Sequence record: MW349129.1
Direction: 5' to 3' (one strand)
DNA: 64,000 nucleotides
Shown one piece after another: positions 14,424 through 24,591 of this stretch. Position 1 is the stretch's first letter. Each line of letters begins with the position of its first letter. A program made the position numbers and the translations under genes. The notes under the pieces were generated by a model. That model was not told the origin of the DNA and searched no databases. It saw nothing but the letters and a program-made list of their open reading frames with translations.

Positions 14424-14434
14424 TATATATTATA
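14424..14434 (+). promoter_or_regulatory. Early-type promoter core TATATATTATA
   Basis: Motif followed by a hairpin, upstream of 14491. Confidence 0.5.
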
Positions 14435-15093: not shown

Positions 15094-15921
15094 ATGTATA
15101 ACAATAAAAATTTTAAGTCAAGTTTAAATTTAAATAAAACAAAATTGAGTGAATTTATAGATAAAGAAGATATAAATTCTGATGTGTCTAAGAAAGTGTA
15201 TTATGAAAAAGTTATTGATTTGTATATGGATCAAATATTTAATGTAGATAATGAATTCTTAAAAAGTTTAATTGACTTTGATGATTTAAAATATACTAAA
15301 GATGAATTAGATTATATAATATATGAAGAAATGGGAGTAAATAGAAATAATAAAAAAGATATATCTTTAATCATTAATAGAGTATATAAATCTTATAAAG
15401 AATCTAAATCAGATAAAGATAATTTAATGAAATATTTATTACCTTTTACGCTATATAATGATGGAATTTTTAATAGTAATTTTTATTTACATTTTAGTTC
15501 TAGTAAATTTATTAAAAATGATTTTATAGATGCACTTACTGATACTTTTATATATATTAGAAATAATAATATAGAATGTGAAGTTATAGAATTATTATTT
15601 AACGAAATATGTACTAAATTATATATACACAGTAATGAAGTAGTATCTAGAATTTTAGTTAGAATAGCTAAAAAGGATTCTAGTTTATTATTTACCGATG
15701 ATACTATATTTAATATACTATATTCTTTATATTCACATCAAACTATTAAGAAAATAAAAAGAAATATAAGTATAGAAAGTATTGAAAAAATTATAAAAAT
15801 GAATAGATATACTTATATTGAAAGAATTGAAAAAGCTATAGGAAAACAATTATCTTTTTATGATAATCCAAACGGTAAAGAAATAAAGAATATGATAAAA
15901 GAATTTAAAAATAATAAATAG
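15094..15921 (+). CDS. Hypothetical protein
   Basis: 275 aa ORF. Confidence 0.6.
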   Translation: MYNNKNFKSSLNLNKTKLSEFIDKEDINSDVSKKVYYEKVIDLYMDQIFNVDNEFLKSLIDFDDLKYTKDELDYIIYEEMGVNRNNKKDISLIINRVYKSYKESKSDKDNLMKYLLPFTLYNDGIFNSNFYLHFSSSKFIKNDFIDALTDTFIYIRNNNIECEVIELLFNEICTKLYIHSNEVVSRILVRIAKKDSSLLFTDDTIFNILYSLYSHQTIKKIKRNISIESIEKIIKMNRYTYIERIEKAIGKQLSFYDNPNGKEIKNMIKEFKNNK

Positions 15922-15936
15922 GGAGTTGAAACGGAT

Positions 15937-16437
15937 ATGTTAAAAAATAAAAATATTGAAATTAACCAAGATATTATTGATCAAGAATTAATGAAAACAA
16001 AATATATGGAAGAGGCGATGTTAAAAGTGTTAAATCAAGATTTAGTAATCAATTTAAGATTTTTAAAAGATAATCTACTATCTGACTGGGAGTTTGAAAA
16101 TAATACAGCTGAATTTAAAGAAATAGAAAAATTCTATGATCCGTCATTAAAAATAAGATTAATTTTTAAAGTTAATAATGAAAAAGAAATCAAGTATACA
16201 CTTAATGAAGACGTTCAAGATATGTTAGAGAATTTCATGATTAAGAAAGCTGACGATGAAAGAGCTTGTCAAATTATTAAATCTGTTATTGAGTATGAAT
16301 TCTTTAAGAAAGAAAATAAAAAGGGTCATGATCTTGATATGGATACAATAGATTTACTAATGGGTAAAGTTAACGAATTAAAAATTAAATACAATATCAG
16401 TAATAAACAAGCTAAGAAATTATATATAGCATTTTAA
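15937..16437 (+). CDS. Hypothetical protein
   Basis: 166 aa ORF. Confidence 0.6.
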   Translation: MLKNKNIEINQDIIDQELMKTKYMEEAMLKVLNQDLVINLRFLKDNLLSDWEFENNTAEFKEIEKFYDPSLKIRLIFKVNNEKEIKYTLNEDVQDMLENFMIKKADDERACQIIKSVIEYEFFKKENKKGHDLDMDTIDLLMGKVNELKIKYNISNKQAKKLYIAF

Positions 16438-16470: not shown

Positions 16471-17100
16471 ATGAAAAATAAAATAAATCTATTTGATTGG
16501 TATATCTATAAAAATGGAATGTCAACAATACTTCCTCTTTTATTTAATGTAATTTTATCTTCAACACTGGTAACATTATTTATTCTTATATTGTCAATTA
16601 ATACTAAATTAGCATTATTATCTTTATTAATATTTATACCAATGATAATTACCTCTATATTTATAAATATAATATTCTTTAATAATAATATTATGACAGA
16701 ATATGGATTAATAAATAACTCATTTAAAGTAAAAGATAAATATTATTCATTTTGGCATATTGAATTAAATGAAGATGACGAGGTTTTTAAAGAAGCTTTT
16801 AACAATTTTAAAGATAGACATGAATGGATTATAGAAGAGAAAAATGTGAAAAATCTATCAGAAATATTGTTAAGAGGATCTTTTATAAGAGATACTAAAA
16901 TATTGGAACCTGTAATGAGAGAAAATAATAGAAAACATTGGAAGAACAATATTGACACAAATAGACTGTTAACTTATAGAGAGTTTCTTAAATATAAAAA
17001 GAATAAAAAGAAATTTGAAGAGTCTAAGAAGTTAGAAAAGGAAATAAAAGAGTTTCAAGATTACTATAATTTAAACACAAAAGGAGAAATTAAAAAATGA
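16471..17100 (+). CDS. Membrane protein with two N-terminal TM helices
   Basis: 209 aa; AAGGAGG RBS. Confidence 0.65.
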   Translation: MKNKINLFDWYIYKNGMSTILPLLFNVILSSTLVTLFILILSINTKLALLSLLIFIPMIITSIFINIIFFNNNIMTEYGLINNSFKVKDKYYSFWHIELNEDDEVFKEAFNNFKDRHEWIIEEKNVKNLSEILLRGSFIRDTKILEPVMRENNRKHWKNNIDTNRLLTYREFLKYKKNKKKFEESKKLEKEIKEFQDYYNLNTKGEIKK

Positions 17101-17561
17101 ATACTAAAATAATCGCTGCATTTCCAGGTACAGGTAAATCTTATATTAAAAATAATGTCACATTCTTAAAAACATCAGATTCGGATTCAACTAGCTTCTC
17201 ATGGTTAATTAAAAATGGAGAAAAAGTTAGAGATCCTAGATTTCCAAAGAATTATATTCGTTATATTAAGGATCTATATTATAAAAATGTAATGGACTAT
17301 ATCTTTGTATCAACTCATAAAGAAGTTATTCAAGAGTTGATTGATAATAATTTAGAATTTGTAGTAGCTTATCCTAAACGTTCAGATAAAGAACTATATT
17401 TAAAAAGATATAAAGAAAGAGGTTCAGATAGTAAATTTATTGAACTTCTTGATAATATGTTTGATAGCTTCATAGATGACATAGAAGATAAAGTTCCTGA
17501 AGAAAACAGAATTGAACTTAATCATAATGAATATCTATCTAATGTATTAGAAAAAATTTAA
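17097..17561 (+). CDS. P-loop NTPase / nucleotide kinase-like protein
   Basis: N-terminal Walker A IIAAFPGTGKSY. Confidence 0.7.
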   Translation: MNTKIIAAFPGTGKSYIKNNVTFLKTSDSDSTSFSWLIKNGEKVRDPRFPKNYIRYIKDLYYKNVMDYIFVSTHKEVIQELIDNNLEFVVAYPKRSDKELYLKRYKERGSDSKFIELLDNMFDSFIDDIEDKVPEENRIELNHNEYLSNVLEKI

Positions 17562-17578: not shown

Positions 17579-18037
17579 ATGAGATACTTTAAAGGTGTAG
17601 TGGCAGGGAAAGACTTTTTCTTAAAAGCAAATAATGAAGAAAACGCAATTAAGGAATTAGCATTAAAAGAAATTGAGTCTATAGGATCTTTTACAATGTT
17701 AAGTAATGAAAAACAGAAATATCTAATGATTTTCTTTAATGAAGATGAAGATAAATTTGTTATTGGAAATGGATTAGAATCATATATATCATTAGACAGT
17801 CTTAAATCTGAATTAGAATCTAAAGAGTTAGAATGTTATTATTTAGAATTAGGTAATACAGATAATATTGAGATAGATGGTATTATAAAAAATGAAGAAT
17901 ACACATTAACAGAAATAATAATGGAAAGCGTCAAATCAACTATGAATGATTTTTATGAGCAAGTTATAAATTCTGTATTAACTGAGCTGACTGAAAAAGA
18001 ATATAAAAATTCAATAGTTGTTAATAATTTTAAATAA
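17579..18037 (+). CDS. Hypothetical protein with the shared C-terminal tag
   Basis: Ends LTELTEKEYKNSIVVNNFK. Confidence 0.65.
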   Translation: MRYFKGVVAGKDFFLKANNEENAIKELALKEIESIGSFTMLSNEKQKYLMIFFNEDEDKFVIGNGLESYISLDSLKSELESKELECYYLELGNTDNIEIDGIIKNEEYTLTEIIMESVKSTMNDFYEQVINSVLTELTEKEYKNSIVVNNFK

Positions 18038-18056
18038 CTAGGAAGGAATAGAAATA

Positions 18057-18527
18057 ATGAGAAATAAAAAAAGAAGTATAGATAGTTTGATAAATAATAA
18101 TCTAGAATTACCAATTGAGGTTACTGAAAATTATATAAATAATTTTATATATAAGTCATTAACTACTATAAATGAGAAAAAAGAAATAAAACCAAATCAC
18201 ACTTATATAATTAATCATGAAAATGAATTATTTAATAAAGCAGATAATTTCATAAATTGTATTTTAGAATTATTAAAAGGTGATGTAGGTACTTTAATAG
18301 ATAAAAAAGATTTAAAGTTAAAAAGAAATATAAAGAAAGATAATATAAATAATTGTCTTACAATATATACTATTGTAGAAACTTTAACTTACAATAATTC
18401 TATAACAATGATGATGGTAAAAAATGTAAATAATATTAATAAAGAAGTAACTGGTGAACTAATATTTGATATTAACATAAGTGACAAACTAGGTAAAGAT
18501 AATTATAATGAAAATATTTATATTTAA
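18057..18527 (+). CDS. Hypothetical protein
   Basis: 156 aa ORF. Confidence 0.6.
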   Translation: MRNKKRSIDSLINNNLELPIEVTENYINNFIYKSLTTINEKKEIKPNHTYIINHENELFNKADNFINCILELLKGDVGTLIDKKDLKLKRNIKKDNINNCLTIYTIVETLTYNNSITMMMVKNVNNINKEVTGELIFDINISDKLGKDNYNENIYI

Positions 18528-18539
18528 TTACTATTTAAA

Positions 18540-18550
18540 TATATATTATA
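18540..18550 (+). promoter_or_regulatory. Early-type promoter core TATATATTATA
   Basis: Motif followed by GATGAAG. Confidence 0.55.
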
Positions 18551-18582
18551 TAGATGAAGTTAATTAAAATACAGGAGATGAA

Positions 18583-18930
18583 TTGGATATGTTAAACGAT
18601 ACTAAAAAAGTTTTAGATAGAATTTATGACAAAATAAATGGTGATTTAATTGTTATTTCAGAGTGTATAGATTTATTTGATAAGGAATTAAATTACACTG
18701 TAACTGAAGGTAATGAGAGAACATCAAATCTTGATTATTTGGCAGATTCTTTAATTGTAGTTGCTTCAGATATATTTACATTAAATGAAGTACTTAATAT
18801 TGACGAAGAAACTATTAATAATGAATTATTATCAGAATTTAAATTAAGTTATAGAATGATACAGAATTTTCATATGAAATTGGAATTAAATAGCTATCAA
18901 TTAAAAGAGATTAAAACCTCGATTGAATAA
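18583..18930 (+). CDS. Acidic hypothetical early protein
   Basis: 115 aa with AGGAG RBS. Confidence 0.6.
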   Translation: MDMLNDTKKVLDRIYDKINGDLIVISECIDLFDKELNYTVTEGNERTSNLDYLADSLIVVASDIFTLNEVLNIDEETINNELLSEFKLSYRMIQNFHMKLELNSYQLKEIKTSIE

Positions 18931-18949
18931 ATACAGGAGATGATTAGGA

Positions 18950-19435
18950 ATGAATTATTTAAAGAATGGAAAAGAGGAGGTCTTTCCAGTCAATGAAGAA
19001 GGAATGGAAAATATCATATTCTTTCTTCTAGACTACTCACAGAAAAATGATTATAATACAATGAACATAATTAAGGAAATAAATGATCACGTGATGAAAG
19101 GCGAAAATATAAGTAATGAATTTATTAATGAAAAGACAAAAGAAACGATATTAACACTAGGTAAAGTAAAAGGCAATTTAACTAATGAATTAGCTAGAAG
19201 CGGATATATAGTTAATTTCTCTAGAAATAAAATATCATTGTCAATATACGTAAAAAATAACAGTTTCAAATTAGTAAGAATATCAGATCATAATATCAAT
19301 AAGAAAGTAAATAAAAAAGGAGTAATAAGTAATAGGTTTGACTATCAAATTAAAGCTGACAGTAAATTGGTAAGTAATAAATCCTTAAAGAAATACGGTA
19401 TTGATGTATCGGAAGGAATTTATTATTTAGATTAA
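18950..19435 (+). CDS. Hypothetical protein with an RISDH motif (possible nuclease-like domain)
   Basis: KLVRISDHN motif. Confidence 0.45.
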   Translation: MNYLKNGKEEVFPVNEEGMENIIFFLLDYSQKNDYNTMNIIKEINDHVMKGENISNEFINEKTKETILTLGKVKGNLTNELARSGYIVNFSRNKISLSIYVKNNSFKLVRISDHNINKKVNKKGVISNRFDYQIKADSKLVSNKSLKKYGIDVSEGIYYLD

Positions 19436-19460
19436 TAAATGTATTGAATTAAAAATCAAT

Positions 19461-19471
19461 TATATATTATA
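19461..19471 (+). promoter_or_regulatory. Early-type promoter core TATATATTATA
   Basis: Followed by ATAATGAAG and hairpin GAAGATAAAT...ATTATCTTC. Confidence 0.65.
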
Positions 19472-19530
19472 ATAATGAAGATAAATATTATTAATATTAT
19501 CTTCAATAAAAAAAAAGGGAGTTTTATATT

Positions 19531-19824
19531 ATGGCAAAATTAAATGAAGAAATATTAAGAGATTTTCAAGTAAGAACTGAGATTGATGGAGAATTTGAAG
19601 TAATGGAATCTGATGAGCTCGGTGTTGATGAAGCTTATGAGAATGAATTAATTAAAGAGTTGGGGGTAGATGTAGATTCAAGCGTATTTTCTTATGCAAT
19701 AGCAGAAGTAAATGATGAAGAAAATATGTATACCTTAGAGTATAGTCATGAAGGTGTTCTACTAACTATTCATGATTATGATGAAGATTATGTACCACAA
19801 ACTATTTATAAAAACATAATCTAA
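19531..19824 (+). CDS. Acidic DNA-mimic protein, candidate uracil-DNA glycosylase inhibitor (Ugi/SAUGI-like)
   Basis: 97 aa, 27 D/E versus 5 K/R; ES(D)E motif; NMY..LLTIHDYDED segment aligns by eye to SAUGI as recalled; monocistronic. Confidence 0.55.
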   Translation: MAKLNEEILRDFQVRTEIDGEFEVMESDELGVDEAYENELIKELGVDVDSSVFSYAIAEVNDEENMYTLEYSHEGVLLTIHDYDEDYVPQTIYKNII

Positions 19825-19835
19825 TAATTTAAATT

Positions 19836-19866
19836 ATAGCTGATATCTTTAATGGATATCAGCTAT
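19836..19866 (+). terminator. Intrinsic terminator hairpin
   Basis: ATAGCTGATATC / GATATCAGCTAT followed by a T-rich tract. Confidence 0.8.
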
Positions 19867-19908
19867 ATTATTTTAATTTTTTTACTTAAAGGAGATGAAA
19901 GGGATAAT

Positions 19909-20520
19909 ATGAATTATTTTGAATTGGAATATACAGGTTTAATTGATAATAATGAATTAGATAATGCAGTTTTACACAAACAAGAAAATGAAGAAATTGA
20001 ATCGGGTCTTTTAAATATGATTTTATTTAAATTGTTTCTAAAAGAATTTTATAATGTCAATATGGATGATAATGATTTATGTAAAAAACTAAAAATAGAA
20101 ATAAGAAGTATTCATAGTTATAATAATTCAGAAATTTATATTAATGAAGACTTTGCTGAAATATATAATGGTATTAATCCGAATAATAATATTAAATCAG
20201 GAAAAATAAATAAAGATTATGAATATTTATTTAAATTTATTAAAGATAATATAAATGAAAAAGATTTAAATAATATACATGTGATTAAATTTACAACATT
20301 TGAAATAGAGAAATATAAACCTGTTGTGATTTTTATAAACTCAGATAAACTTAGAATTAAGACCAATAAATCAATTAGTAGATATACATCAGCAAATGAA
20401 TTTGTATTCTATAATATTTCAAGCGAAAGTTTATATAGATTAATGAAAAATACAAATAGAATAAGTAATATAATGGAAAAAGAATATAAAAATAAATTAG
20501 TTAAAAGGAGTTTCTTATAA
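19909..20520 (+). CDS. Hypothetical protein with the shared C-terminal tag
   Basis: Start moved to ATG 19909 (after AAGGAG); ends ISNIMEKEYKNKLVKRSFL. Confidence 0.65.
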   Translation: MNYFELEYTGLIDNNELDNAVLHKQENEEIESGLLNMILFKLFLKEFYNVNMDDNDLCKKLKIEIRSIHSYNNSEIYINEDFAEIYNGINPNNNIKSGKINKDYEYLFKFIKDNINEKDLNNIHVIKFTTFEIEKYKPVVIFINSDKLRIKTNKSISRYTSANEFVFYNISSESLYRLMKNTNRISNIMEKEYKNKLVKRSFL

Positions 20521-21059
20521 TGTATGAAGTTAGTAAAAAATTTAAATATGATAAAAGAGATAAAGAATTCACATTATTCCACCATAAATCAAAAGAAGAA
20601 ATAACTGACTCATTTATAATTAATAATTATATTTCATATGTAATATATCAATGCTATGAGAGAACACCAGGAAATGCAGAAGTATGGATAGAAATTATTG
20701 ATATAAAACGTAATTTATTATCTAAATTTATATTTGATAACAGACCATCTTTCGGGTCTAATTATTTTCCTAAGTGTAATGTAGGTATACAAGATAATAG
20801 CGATAATAATATTGTAACTATTGAATTTAGTGATAAATATAAAAGACATAATTTCATTTTAGAGAAAATATCTAAATTTAATAATGTACTTATTAATTTT
20901 TATAAAGAAGAATTATTTCCTTATGAAGATAAAGAACTTACTTTATTAAAAACTGTATTTAAAACTAATGACATTAAATTTTATCAAGATAAAGGTTTAA
21001 TTAGTTATATTTCAGATAAAGAAGCTAGAAAAATTTTAGTAAAAGAAAACTTTAAATAG
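20520..21059 (+). CDS. Hypothetical protein with the shared C-terminal tag
   Basis: Ends ISYISDKEARKILVKENFK. Confidence 0.65.
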   Translation: MYEVSKKFKYDKRDKEFTLFHHKSKEEITDSFIINNYISYVIYQCYERTPGNAEVWIEIIDIKRNLLSKFIFDNRPSFGSNYFPKCNVGIQDNSDNNIVTIEFSDKYKRHNFILEKISKFNNVLINFYKEELFPYEDKELTLLKTVFKTNDIKFYQDKGLISYISDKEARKILVKENFK

Positions 21060-21075
21060 AATAGGGGTAAACAGA

Positions 21076-21615
21076 TTGAATAGATACTTTAAATTTAAAT
21101 TAAATAATAAAAGTGATTACGATGTATTTAAATTTTCAGGAAATGAGGAAGAAATAAGTGATTCTAAAATTATAGAATCTTATTTTGCTTATATGTTTAA
21201 TTATTATATAAATGAAGCAATACCTGACTCTAGTATGATTAATATTGCTGTATTTACTAGAGGTGAAGGAAAGAGATTATTGAGATTTTCTATAGATAAA
21301 CCACCAATTTATATAAAAGAGCCAGTTAGTAGTTTATTATTTATGAATGAAAATGATGAAGAAAAACAAATTGATTTTAAAGAATTTGATGAAATTAAAA
21401 AGTTTATACATGAAAAGATTATGGAATTGAATAAAGATGAATTTTGTATTTACATTGATTATAATTTTGATTTTTCTTATAATATAGTTTATGATAAAGT
21501 ATTTGATGGGGTATTATTTGTTAGAGACAATCTAAATTTTTATATTCAGTCTCATATTAAAGAAACAGGTGAAAATGAATATAAAAATTATCTAGTGAGG
21601 GAGAATTTTAAATAA
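21076..21615 (+). CDS. Hypothetical protein with the shared C-terminal tag
   Basis: Ends IKETGENEYKNYLVRENFK. Confidence 0.65.
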   Translation: MNRYFKFKLNNKSDYDVFKFSGNEEEISDSKIIESYFAYMFNYYINEAIPDSSMINIAVFTRGEGKRLLRFSIDKPPIYIKEPVSSLLFMNENDEEKQIDFKEFDEIKKFIHEKIMELNKDEFCIYIDYNFDFSYNIVYDKVFDGVLFVRDNLNFYIQSHIKETGENEYKNYLVRENFK

Positions 21616-21636
21616 AAGAGAAAGTGAGATAAATAA

Positions 21637-22413
21637 ATGGAATACGTTATGATAAATAAATTACTAACAAAAAATGATTCATCTGAATTAAAACTAAATA
21701 TGGTCAAACCGTATAAAAAGGAAGAAGACTTTTTCAATTTCTTTTTAAACTTTATTATAGAATATAATTCATATCATATAGGAAATTATAAATACTTTTA
21801 TAGTATAAACTCATTATCAGATTATAATTCAGATTATCAAATAAATGGAAATCCTTATGTACCATTTGAGGAAGGAATAAAGGTAAATGAAGTTATTCAT
21901 ATTTATAAAAATAAATTATTTAGAAATATAAGTAAAGACATTGAAAATAGAATAATTGTACTTTATGTAGAAGATAAAGAAGATGATATTTCCTTTTATA
22001 TATTAACATCTAATTACTTTAATAGAAAATTTAAAAAAGAATATAAAGAAGAACTTTTCGATAAAGAAGAAATATTATCTAGACTTATAGTAAAATCTTT
22101 TCTAAATGAAAAGATTTTATTAGATTCACATTCAGAATTTTTAGTTATTAAAGATAAAGAAAAATTAAGCAATTTAATTACTAATTTAATGAAAAATCAA
22201 AAATACAAAATTTTAAACTTTGATTTCTTAAGTAATAGTGAATTAAAATATAGTAGAATACTATTTAATAAAAATGTATATGATAATAAATTAGTCCTAA
22301 AACATTTAAAAGGAATAAGTTACAAAGATATTATTGATAAAGATAAAGAGAAAATTACATTTATAGATAAAGAAGATTACAAACATTTAGTAATTAAGGA
22401 ATCATTTAAATAA
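21637..22413 (+). CDS. Hypothetical protein with the shared C-terminal tag
   Basis: Ends ITFIDKEDYKHLVIKESFK. Confidence 0.65.
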   Translation: MEYVMINKLLTKNDSSELKLNMVKPYKKEEDFFNFFLNFIIEYNSYHIGNYKYFYSINSLSDYNSDYQINGNPYVPFEEGIKVNEVIHIYKNKLFRNISKDIENRIIVLYVEDKEDDISFYILTSNYFNRKFKKEYKEELFDKEEILSRLIVKSFLNEKILLDSHSEFLVIKDKEKLSNLITNLMKNQKYKILNFDFLSNSELKYSRILFNKNVYDNKLVLKHLKGISYKDIIDKDKEKITFIDKEDYKHLVIKESFK

Positions 22414-22491
22414 ATAATAAATATTCTCATCCATTCACTATGTAATAACTTTTAATTATATAATAATTTTTAGAATGGATGAGATGCTTTT

Positions 22492-23151
22492 ATGAGTAAT
22501 TATTTATATCGTTTTAACAAAAAGAATGTAAATATCTTCTATCATAAAAGGACTAATAATGGTCATAAAATGTTATTTAATAATAGCAATGATAAAGATA
22601 GATCTATATATTTAATAAATACTGATGAAGAAATCAATAATATGGAACTAGTATCTAAATATATTGCTGGAAAAGTATTTGAAACACTAAACCAAGAAAA
22701 TATGAAAATAGTGCATATGGATTTCTTTAATAGTAAATTAGAATTCTTTATAAGTAGATCATCCAAGAATAAATATATAATGAATATGTATTTTAGTTTA
22801 AAAAGTTATAATGATTTAATAGAAAATGAAAAAGAATTTATAGATAGTGTTAATGAACTTAATTTAGACTTTTTAAAATCAGTTTCTTTAGATCAAGACA
22901 ATAATCATATATTGGATATGACATTAATATTTTTAATAGATAAAAATAAAATAGATGAATTTATTAAAAATCTATTTTATATTAATTATATAAAGATAAT
23001 AGAATTTATAATAGATAATATATCTGTATATGCAGATGATTATAAGAAATTTAATGAAGAAATAAATATTCTTTTGGATCATAGAAATTTTATAGAAGAA
23101 ATAACATATAAAGAATATAAAAAGATAATGACGAAAGAGATGTTTATTTAA
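22492..23151 (+). CDS. Hypothetical protein with the shared C-terminal tag
   Basis: Ends IEEITYKEYKKIMTKEMFI. Confidence 0.65.
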   Translation: MSNYLYRFNKKNVNIFYHKRTNNGHKMLFNNSNDKDRSIYLINTDEEINNMELVSKYIAGKVFETLNQENMKIVHMDFFNSKLEFFISRSSKNKYIMNMYFSLKSYNDLIENEKEFIDSVNELNLDFLKSVSLDQDNNHILDMTLIFLIDKNKIDEFIKNLFYINYIKIIEFIIDNISVYADDYKKFNEEINILLDHRNFIEEITYKEYKKIMTKEMFI

Positions 23152-23164
23152 GGAGTAATTAATT

Positions 23165-23875
23165 ATGAAGATTTCAGCCAATAAAGAATTATTAGGAAAG
23201 AAAGTTATACCTTTAGGTTTTAAACAACTTAATAACTTATATAGAGATCATGATTATGTATATTTAAGAATTCCTGAAATATTTAATGTATTTGATAAGT
23301 ATCAATTTAAGGATAATAAATTTGTATATCTTAAAACAGAAATAAAACCCAGTACTATTGTAGATTTAATAGATTCTTTATCAGGTGGATACAATGGTTT
23401 ATTGAATAAATATATTTCTAATGATATACTAAATATACATTATACAAAGAAAAATTTATTAGATATTTCTAATAGTGAATATAAAACTCTAGAAGAAACA
23501 AGGCTTCAGCTAGATTTAGAATTAGAATTCATAAGTAGTAATGAAAAACAAAGAAAGCAATCTAATATTTTAATAAAGGATATTCATAAAGAAATAAATT
23601 ATATAAGGAACGAATATACAAAAGTATTCACTCTTAAGAAAAGTAAAACTAGAAATAATAAACCAATAAAAATAAAAATTAGAAATTTATATGATGAAGA
23701 TCCAATATCTATATTAAAAATAATATTGGACTTGGGAGAAGATTATTGTATAAATAGTACTATATTTAACGCATTTACTTATTCATTAATGTTAACAAAT
23801 AATTTAGATTTCATAGATGAAAAAGAATTTCAGGATATAGTTAAGAAAGAGAAAGTGAAAAATACTTTCATTTAA
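23165..23875 (+). CDS. Hypothetical protein with a variant of the C-terminal tag
   Basis: Ends LDFIDEKEFQDIVKKEKVKNTFI. Confidence 0.6.
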   Translation: MKISANKELLGKKVIPLGFKQLNNLYRDHDYVYLRIPEIFNVFDKYQFKDNKFVYLKTEIKPSTIVDLIDSLSGGYNGLLNKYISNDILNIHYTKKNLLDISNSEYKTLEETRLQLDLELEFISSNEKQRKQSNILIKDIHKEINYIRNEYTKVFTLKKSKTRNNKPIKIKIRNLYDEDPISILKIILDLGEDYCINSTIFNAFTYSLMLTNNLDFIDEKEFQDIVKKEKVKNTFI

Positions 23876-23881
23876 AACATT

Positions 23882-23922
23882 ATTCATATAGTTTGAGGAA
23901 ATTTTCCTTAAGCTATATGAAT
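23882..23922 (+). terminator. Terminator ending the early region
   Basis: ATTCATATAG...CTATATGAAT stem followed by a long T tract. Confidence 0.75.
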
Positions 23923-24072: not shown

Positions 24073-24591
24073 ATGGAAAAACATGATAAATTAACTGAAG
24101 AGTTAGAAGCTTTATACGAACAATCTCAAGAAGAATCTTTAGAAGAGCAATTCGAAAGCATTATTGAATCTGCTGATGAAGAAGAAACTGAAGATAAAGA
24201 TTCTAAAGAAGATTCAGAAGAAGAAGAAGAAACATCTGTTGAAGAACAATTTAACAGTATCTTAGAATCAGAAGATGAAGAATCTGACGAAGATGAGGAA
24301 GAAGATTCAGATGAAGACTCAGTTGAAGAATCTGATGATGAAGATGATGAAGAAGATGACGAAGATTCTTTAGAAGAAGAATTAAATCGTTTATTTGAAG
24401 AAAATGAAGATCCAGAAATGGATGTTGAAAAGCAAACTACAAAAGCTAACAACATGAACTCAAAAAAATCATCTGATTCTACTGAACATCCTGAAGAAGA
24501 TGTAAGTAAAATCACTTCAGAAGATGAAGACGAAGACGAAGATGACGAAGATGAATCATTAGAAGAATCATTAGATCGTATCTTTGGTTAA
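24073..24591 (+). CDS. Highly acidic protein, probable prohead core/scaffold
   Basis: Repeated SLEEQFxSILES-like units containing (I/L)xE sites typical of T4-type prohead protease substrates. Confidence 0.55.
   Translation: MEKHDKLTEELEALYEQSQEESLEEQFESIIESADEEETEDKDSKEDSEEEEETSVEEQFNSILESEDEESDEDEEEDSDEDSVEESDDEDDEEDDEDSLEEELNRLFEENEDPEMDVEKQTTKANNMNSKKSSDSTEHPEEDVSKITSEDEDEDEDDEDESLEESLDRIFG

Follow-up and report, generated by a model that had tools for sequence, protein, structure and literature searches.

A conserved C-terminal tail on tandemly arranged, fast-diverging genes of the Staphylococcus jumbo phage Madawaska

The ClpX-binding tail of SspB and the acidic tip of SSB are C-terminal tethering peptides that follow flexible linkers and are disordered alone, and the ankyrin/PRANC proteins of poxviruses form large paralog families in which an F-box-like motif at the C-terminus plugs the proteins into one host machine. 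Virion loading in T4 (capsid targeting sequence) and in the phiKZ inner-body families relies on N-terminal or protease-processed signals carried by late-expressed proteins. Among jumbo phages, an expansion of about 35 zinc-ribbon copies has been described in Bacillus phage G (Iyer et al. 2021, PMC7824862). Here we describe seven genes, gp30 and gp35-gp40, of the Staphylococcus phage Madawaska (MW349129.1; genome 265,446 bp), which lie within the analyzed window of 64,000 nucleotides (nt 1-64000 of that record) and whose products end in a similar tail. We assign a probability of roughly 0.55 to the reading in which the seven proteins are part of one clade-specific, tandemly duplicated, fast-evolving family with constrained termini as its scaffold; a sequence-only reading of the same DNA had viewed the tail as a docking or sorting peptide.

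Madawaska is an AR9-like jumbo myovirus with split virion and non-virion RNA polymerases. Its kin are MarsHill, PALS_2, S6, DC4, LY01, Machias, AH12, PB50 and SA1, with Bacillus AR9/PBS1 being farther removed. The genome has a G+C content of about 25%, and codons for Lys, Asn, Tyr, Phe and Ile are abundant. In its published description, uracil-containing DNA is presumed and early promoters of the AR9 type, built around a TATATTAT core, are predicted (Korn et al., bioRxiv 10.1101/2020.12.14.422802), and no uracil-DNA glycosylase inhibitor is known for these phages (PMC10303552).

The C-terminal tail and its distribution

All seven C-termini quoted in the sequence-only reading are found exactly in the open reading frames (ORFs) gp30 and gp35-gp40. 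The seven tagged proteins were thus borne out, but their number was far too low: when the tail profile was iterated over the whole Madawaska genome, taken from the public record, it yielded about 31 tagged proteins, or roughly 12% of the genes, some of them with weakened tails. They are encoded in five blocks of non-structural genes, all on the + strand (Table 1), and gp260 and gp266, with decayed tails, stand outside this count. A hidden Markov model (HMM) built solely from the seven tails and applied at a threshold of at least 8 bits matched 19 ORFs, 18 of them at the exact C-terminus, as compared with a mean of 0.3 matches in 20 residue-shuffled proteomes, none of which was C-terminal. In four related genomes the tail is strictly terminal, with 77 C-terminal and no internal matches at the same threshold. 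Phe occupies position -2 in 94 and Lys position -1 in 67 of 101 members, with Asn, Gly, Ser or Thr at -3 in 86, and the distance from the tail to the stop codon is constant in 99. Divergent pairs show 55% identity in the tail, as opposed to 33% in the middle and 37% at the N-terminus, and no other element of these proteins is as conserved as the tail.

Searching the proteome and the related phages with the motif, as had been proposed, revealed many further members, but these are limited to Staphylococcus jumbo phages except for two weak matches. A six-frame search detected 15-25 tail matches each in Madawaska, Machias, SA1, AH12 and LY01, none in Listeria LPJP1, Bacillus AR9 and Yersinia phiR1-37, and two in Bacillus BpSp (E 0.007 and 0.12), the better of which is in an open frame of 35 amino acids (aa). 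A full HMMER profile search with the gp36/37 profile returned 5 matches among 1.8 billion representative proteins, namely four of 177-179 aa, one of them the gp37 ortholog also obtained by word search, and one odd protein of 546 aa. Word-index protein searches with gp37, gp39 and gp40 gave close orthologs only, gp39 had no match in an IMG/VR scan, and in the literature on these phages and a survey of jumbo phages we found no description of the family. The 546-aa protein matches the profile in six short stretches (E 3e-8), and is possibly a repetitive or low-complexity protein.

The low G+C content and the abundance of Lys, Asn, Tyr, Phe and Ile codons would suit a tail that reflects an element of the DNA or RNA, or that is an artefact of AT-rich base composition. 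The codons of the tail tell otherwise: information is lowest at position 3 (0.46 bits, versus 0.82 at position 1 and 0.69 at position 2), synonymous codons vary freely (TTA, CTA and TTG for Leu, GTT, GTA, GTG and GTC for Val, AAA and AAG for Lys), protein-level substitutions are conservative, and no sequence is conserved 3′ of the stop codons. Since synonymous codons vary, third positions are the least conserved and nothing is kept past the stop, selection on the tail acts on the peptide, and not on a DNA or RNA signal. A promoter, a ribosome-binding site context or a recombination site is ruled out by the codon pattern and the unconserved post-stop sequence, while chance or AT-rich composition is ruled out by the shuffled proteomes, with their lack of C-terminal matches, and by LPJP1, AR9 and phiR1-37, which are equally AT-rich, double as negative controls and have no matches at all. 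A nucleotide-level or compositional origin of the tail is, in our estimation, scarcely credible.

Bodies, N-terminal motif and predicted structures

The bodies of the seven proteins had been described as dissimilar, and for most of them no similarity is indeed detectable, but gp36 and gp37 are paralogs along their entire length. Machias, AH12, SA1 and LY01 have a single gene where Madawaska has these two, and both match that gene, from which, on the evidence of this comparison, they are descended. Single-sequence searches with the last 22 residues removed linked only gp36 with gp37 (weakly), gp132 with gp133 and gp269 with gp265. Profile comparison by hhalign found no links among the six ortholog groups of the window (probability <1%), and over 23 ortholog groups it connected 2 of 253 pairs, gp130 with gp132/133 (80%) and gp123 with gp125 (72%); gp117 and gp119, as well as gp265 and gp269, are further neighbor paralogs. 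To judge from gene comparisons, tandem duplication is visibly generating members. Tail identity is also slightly higher within arrays (47%) than between them (40%, p=0.005).

Between Madawaska and Machias or SA1, the bodies of gp30 and gp35-38 have retained 27-37% identity, gp39 being the exception at about 75%; as a yardstick, the beta subunit of the non-virion RNA polymerase is 84-92% identical between relatives. The gp30 orthologs in LY01, Machias and AH12 have kept the tail on bodies with identity down to 27-29%, and gp38 is evolving fast (30-48% identity to its orthologs). Its ortholog is missing from one metagenomic relative, and array content thus differs among relatives. The most conserved member is gp39, with 74-97% identity to its orthologs.

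Tails can also decay. The product of gp265 (260606-261034 in Madawaska) is a clear body homolog of the tagged gp269, with a decayed tail that is two residues longer (..CEVLYFKRS); the tail of its SA1 ortholog is likewise decayed and longer, and gp265 is a natural tail-lost variant that could be used for comparison. In the window, gp26 (15094-15921, + strand; ending in ..KEIKNMIKEFKNNK) and gp27 (15937-16437, + strand; ending in ..ISNKQAKKLYIAF) have seemingly decayed or shortened tails which are under the profile threshold.

The sequence-only reading had further supposed that the bodies are variable cargo domains such as anti-defence effectors, but no recognizable domain emerged in the 27 tagged proteins scanned. 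The seven proteins gave no Pfam match at gathering score and no significant match in PHROGs, NCBIfam or PADLOC, and 20 further members gave none in Pfam at E<=0.01; ten neighbor proteins, too, had nothing above threshold in Pfam. Scores of 0.76-0.82 in the ESM Atlas are within the noise range, and YbjN/CesT-like clusters, obtained there for gp39 only, constitute an unconfirmed lead.

The second constant part of these proteins is found at the opposite end. Many members open with an aromatic strand and a turn (MRYFKG.., MNRYFKFKL.., MKYYRLT.EG.., KKYFLCK..DEL.EV), and among 26 tagged proteins 14 have the motif [YF][YF][KREL] in their first 30 residues, as opposed to 8 of 90 size-matched others (p=3e-6), with one of the latter eight being the weak-tail member gp117.

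AlphaFold models were obtained for two members. That of gp37, built from 12 sequences (down to 24% identity), has a mean predicted local distance difference test score (pLDDT) of 83.7 and a predicted template modelling score (pTM) of 0.79, and consists of a hairpin (2-8, 15-21), a helix, four strands, a helix, two strands, a short helix and the tail, which DSSP assigns to a strand (161-164) and a helix (166-177); these two blocks have pLDDT of 92, the highest of any block in the protein, and 84. The gp40 model (6 sequences, pLDDT 78.3, pTM 0.82) combines a hairpin (32-37, 53-58), alpha/beta elements whose order is similar to that of gp37 and extra helices, and its tail, which contains a 4-residue insertion, is again assigned to a strand (215-217) and a helix (219-234), with block pLDDT of 85 and 86 falling to 60 in the last six residues. 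Both cores begin with the N-terminal hairpin, and the two models are broadly co-linear (hairpin, helix, strands, helix, strands, strand-helix). In BFVD, the gp40 model matched its own ortholog alone, while the gp37 model recovered its orthologs and, more weakly (E 1e-4 to 1e-2, template modelling score (TM) 0.30-0.45), proteins whose sizes and accession series fit tagged paralogs, although their identity is unconfirmed. Structure prediction therefore leaves the sequence-only reading with two models that do not match each other, as it would have it, but with a tail that is ordered in both models and is not a peptide on a flexible linker.

When standard helix-capping rules were applied to the tail alignment and the gp37 model, the T/S-D/E-E-x-E stretch could be read as the N-cap box of a helix, Glu at i and Lys at i+4 as a stabilizing pair, and Asn or Gly before the near-invariant Phe as a C-cap with the Phe folding back, and the aromatic and aliphatic positions would fall on two faces of the helix. 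The conserved polar residues would then be mostly explicable as making a rigid, packed helix, and therefore a structural element would fit better than a linear motif, although such a rigid helix could also be a recognition surface. We consider a membrane-targeting amphipathic helix unlikely, as the helical wheel of the consensus distributes the hydrophobic residues over two faces and the charges nearly cancel out.

The same constraints bear on the idea that the tail is a common regulatory signal that acts before or after folding, either as a C-terminal degron, by which a protease would clear early proteins together, or as a nascent-peptide element of about exit-tunnel length, which would modulate termination and re-initiation in packed polycistronic arrays. 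Nearly all members keep the same distance to the stop codon, the tail is 17-20 residues long, and the genes are tightly packed with overlapping or adjoining stop and start codons, all of which hint at it indirectly. However, helix capping and packing explain the conserved residues at least as well, and the tail is kept on gp40, the last gene of its array, which is followed by a terminator and has no downstream gene for coupling; we regard a signal of this kind as quite improbable.

The docking or sorting peptide of the sequence-only reading deserves more weight. Here the tail would be a portable handle by which about 30 early proteins, otherwise unrelated, are tethered to a single hub, either a Staphylococcus protein or a clade-specific phage protein (e.g. 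a protease, a chaperone or a replication or transcription machine), with the bodies as variable adaptors or effectors. Much of what that reading says of the tail holds: it is real, C-terminal, selected at the protein level and slower-evolving than the bodies. Strict anchoring at the C-terminus with Phe at -2 and, in most members, Lys at -1, bodies that cannot be linked by sequence and differ in the two models, the presence of the tail on very small proteins without the hairpin, and its confinement to phages of Staphylococcus hosts, which suits a host-specific partner, all speak for a handle. On the other side, the tail is an ordered strand and helix in both models, unlike a linear motif that follows a flexible linker, no scanned member has a recognizable cargo domain, no hub candidate was found, and the N-terminal motif and tandem paralogy point to descent and not to repeated acquisition of a tag. 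We therefore hold a docking handle to be unlikely, and its strongest form to be somewhat less likely again. In that form, some 30 early proteins with variable bodies would be plugged by the tail into a single machine, either of Staphylococcus or of the phage, as a phage-encoded adaptor repertoire whose logic would resemble that of SspB-type protease adaptors or of the F-box-like families of poxviruses; if it were true, each body would hand over a different host target (e.g. uracil-DNA glycosylase or defence proteins) to a common fate.

We prefer one divergent family over a docking tag because of the ordered strand-helix, the N-terminal motif, the lack of a cargo domain and the tandem paralogy. 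Such a family would be specific to Staphylococcus jumbo phages and would have grown by tandem duplication in probably early-expressed blocks. Its constant parts would be the two ends, i.e. an N-terminal aromatic beta-hairpin (YYK...G..F..) in about half of the members and the last 17-20 residues, the latter forming a short beta-strand and then an alpha-helix with an N-cap box (T/S-D/E-E), a Glu-to-Lys pair at i/i+4, a C-cap Asn or Gly and, at its end, the invariant Phe one residue before the free C-terminus. The conserved ends may form a structural scaffold that closes the fold, with the tail packing against the N-terminal hairpin, and the variable middle may carry the specificity of each member, which would most plausibly be directed at different targets or defences of the host during takeover. 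Family size, clade restriction, protein-level selection, terminal anchoring and local paralogy are observed, and the strand-helix tail is predicted as ordered in two models; from these we infer common descent of all members and a role in host interaction.

Several results weigh against this family reading. Body profiles remain without any link in 251 of the 253 pairs, and iterated profile searches add just the missing orthologs, leaving the clusters unlinked. No hairpin motif is present in the small members gp94 and gp97 (75-92 aa), and the gp40 model compared by Foldseek with BFVD models of the gp36/37 type gives TM of about 0.2. Moreover, the tail is the most conserved element, and keeping it at a set distance from the stop codon, as 99 of 101 members do, goes beyond the obvious need of a structural helix, a degree of constraint that hints at an added common function.

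Locus, expression and virion content

The positions of the tagged genes and of the associated elements are listed in Table 1. For gp35, the longest ORF begins at 19852, but the true start is probably the annotated one at 19909, because orthologs open with MNYFELEY.. The stop codon of gp35 and the start of gp36 overlap by 1 base.

Table 1. Tagged genes, putative expression signals and tagged blocks in phage Madawaska
Feature	Position or genes	Strand	Description
gp30	17579..18037	+	152 aa, tagged; tail 17975-18034 (tail HMM 27-38 bits at the exact C-terminus); annotated hypothetical protein
gp35	19909..20520	+	203 aa from annotated start; tail 20458-20517; hypothetical protein
gp36	20520..21059	+	179 aa, tagged; full-length paralog of gp37; hypothetical protein
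gp37	21076..21615	+	179 aa, tagged, modelled; hypothetical protein
gp38	21637..22413	+	258 aa, tagged; hypothetical protein
gp39	22492..23151	+	219 aa, tagged; hypothetical protein
gp40	23165..23875	+	236 aa, tagged, modelled; tail 23801-23872; hypothetical protein
Early-promoter-like site, TATATTAT core	14426..14433	+	Heads gp25-gp31 block (contains gp30); putative
Early-promoter-like site	19463..19470	+	Before gp34; last one upstream of gp35-gp40 array; putative
Terminator-like hairpin	19835..19867	+	Between gp34 and gp35
Terminator-like hairpin	23882..23922	+	Closes gp35-gp40 array
Tagged block	gp30, gp35-40	+	Iterated tail profile
Tagged block	gp94, gp97	+	Iterated tail profile
Tagged block	gp105, gp106, gp110	+	Iterated tail profile
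Tagged block	gp117-119, gp121-126, gp130-133	+	Iterated tail profile
Tagged block	gp257, gp259, gp265, gp267-269	+	Iterated tail profile

The description of these proteins as early fits part of the evidence. An extended early-promoter-like motif has 19 genome-wide occurrences on the + strand and a single one on the - strand, versus 0.15 expected, and lies 83-100 nt upstream of gp117, gp122, gp130 and gp269. The gp35-gp40 genes, however, have no site directly upstream; the nearest one precedes gp34, with a terminator-like hairpin in between, and their transcription would therefore involve read-through or an unrecognized promoter. Early expression of the tagged genes is plausible from this arrangement. 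Virion loading, which had been offered as one purpose of the tail, received no support: judged by size and locus numbering, none of the 15 DC4 virion proteins identified by liquid chromatography-mass spectrometry is an ortholog of a tagged protein, in a shallow proteome of 26 peptides.

A few features of the surroundings may be added. The early-promoter-like sites (..TAAATATATATTATAAwwwTGAr) are often directly followed by an inverted repeat in the 5′ leader, as at 19463-19505, 8192, 9541, 18542 and others; that after the site at 19463 is GAAGATAAATATT/AATATTATCTTC. The gene just 5′ of gp30, gp29 (17097-17561, + strand), starts with a P-loop-like GTGKS motif (AAFPGTGKSY), and its product has no Pfam match at E<=0.01. 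Directly past the array terminator, gp41 (24073-24591, + strand) encodes 172 aa, mostly Asp, Glu and Ser, and by composition could be a protein of the DNA-mimic type.

Significance and comparison with known systems

Roughly 12% of the genes in the sole known Staphylococcus aureus jumbo phages belong to a family for which no description was found in the literature searched, and these phages are transducing, broad-host-range candidates for therapy. Fast-evolving early proteins are likely to be where functions in host takeover and counter-defence sit, such functions being expected because the phages have uracil-DNA with no known glycosylase inhibitor. The tail can be searched, synthesized and deleted, which makes the family easy to work on, and, if a single scaffold with hypervariable inserts is involved, it would be a natural case of extreme divergence on fixed termini.

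Comparison with the systems introduced above may begin with the orphan expansions of jumbo phages. As in phage G, dozens of small, fast-diverging, unannotated proteins are encoded in tandem non-structural arrays of a single clade and can be recognized by one short conserved element alone; in contrast to the phage G expansion, the Madawaska motif is unrelated in sequence, C-terminally anchored and paired with an N-terminal hairpin, and there is no nameable domain such as a zinc ribbon. With the SspB and SSB tails it shares a short conserved extreme C-terminus with a critical terminal hydrophobic residue and could, like them, serve one partner, but it is predicted to be an ordered strand and capped helix. 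The poxvirus ankyrin/PRANC proteins resemble it in being a multigene family of viruses whose bodies vary while the C-terminal element stays constant, although there is no relation in sequence or fold and the Madawaska bodies are not repeat proteins. As in the virion loading of T4 and phiKZ, where it directs unrelated proteins to one destination, a short peptide is shared by several proteins, but the Madawaska genes are in early-type blocks and their orthologs are absent among the 15 DC4 virion proteins.

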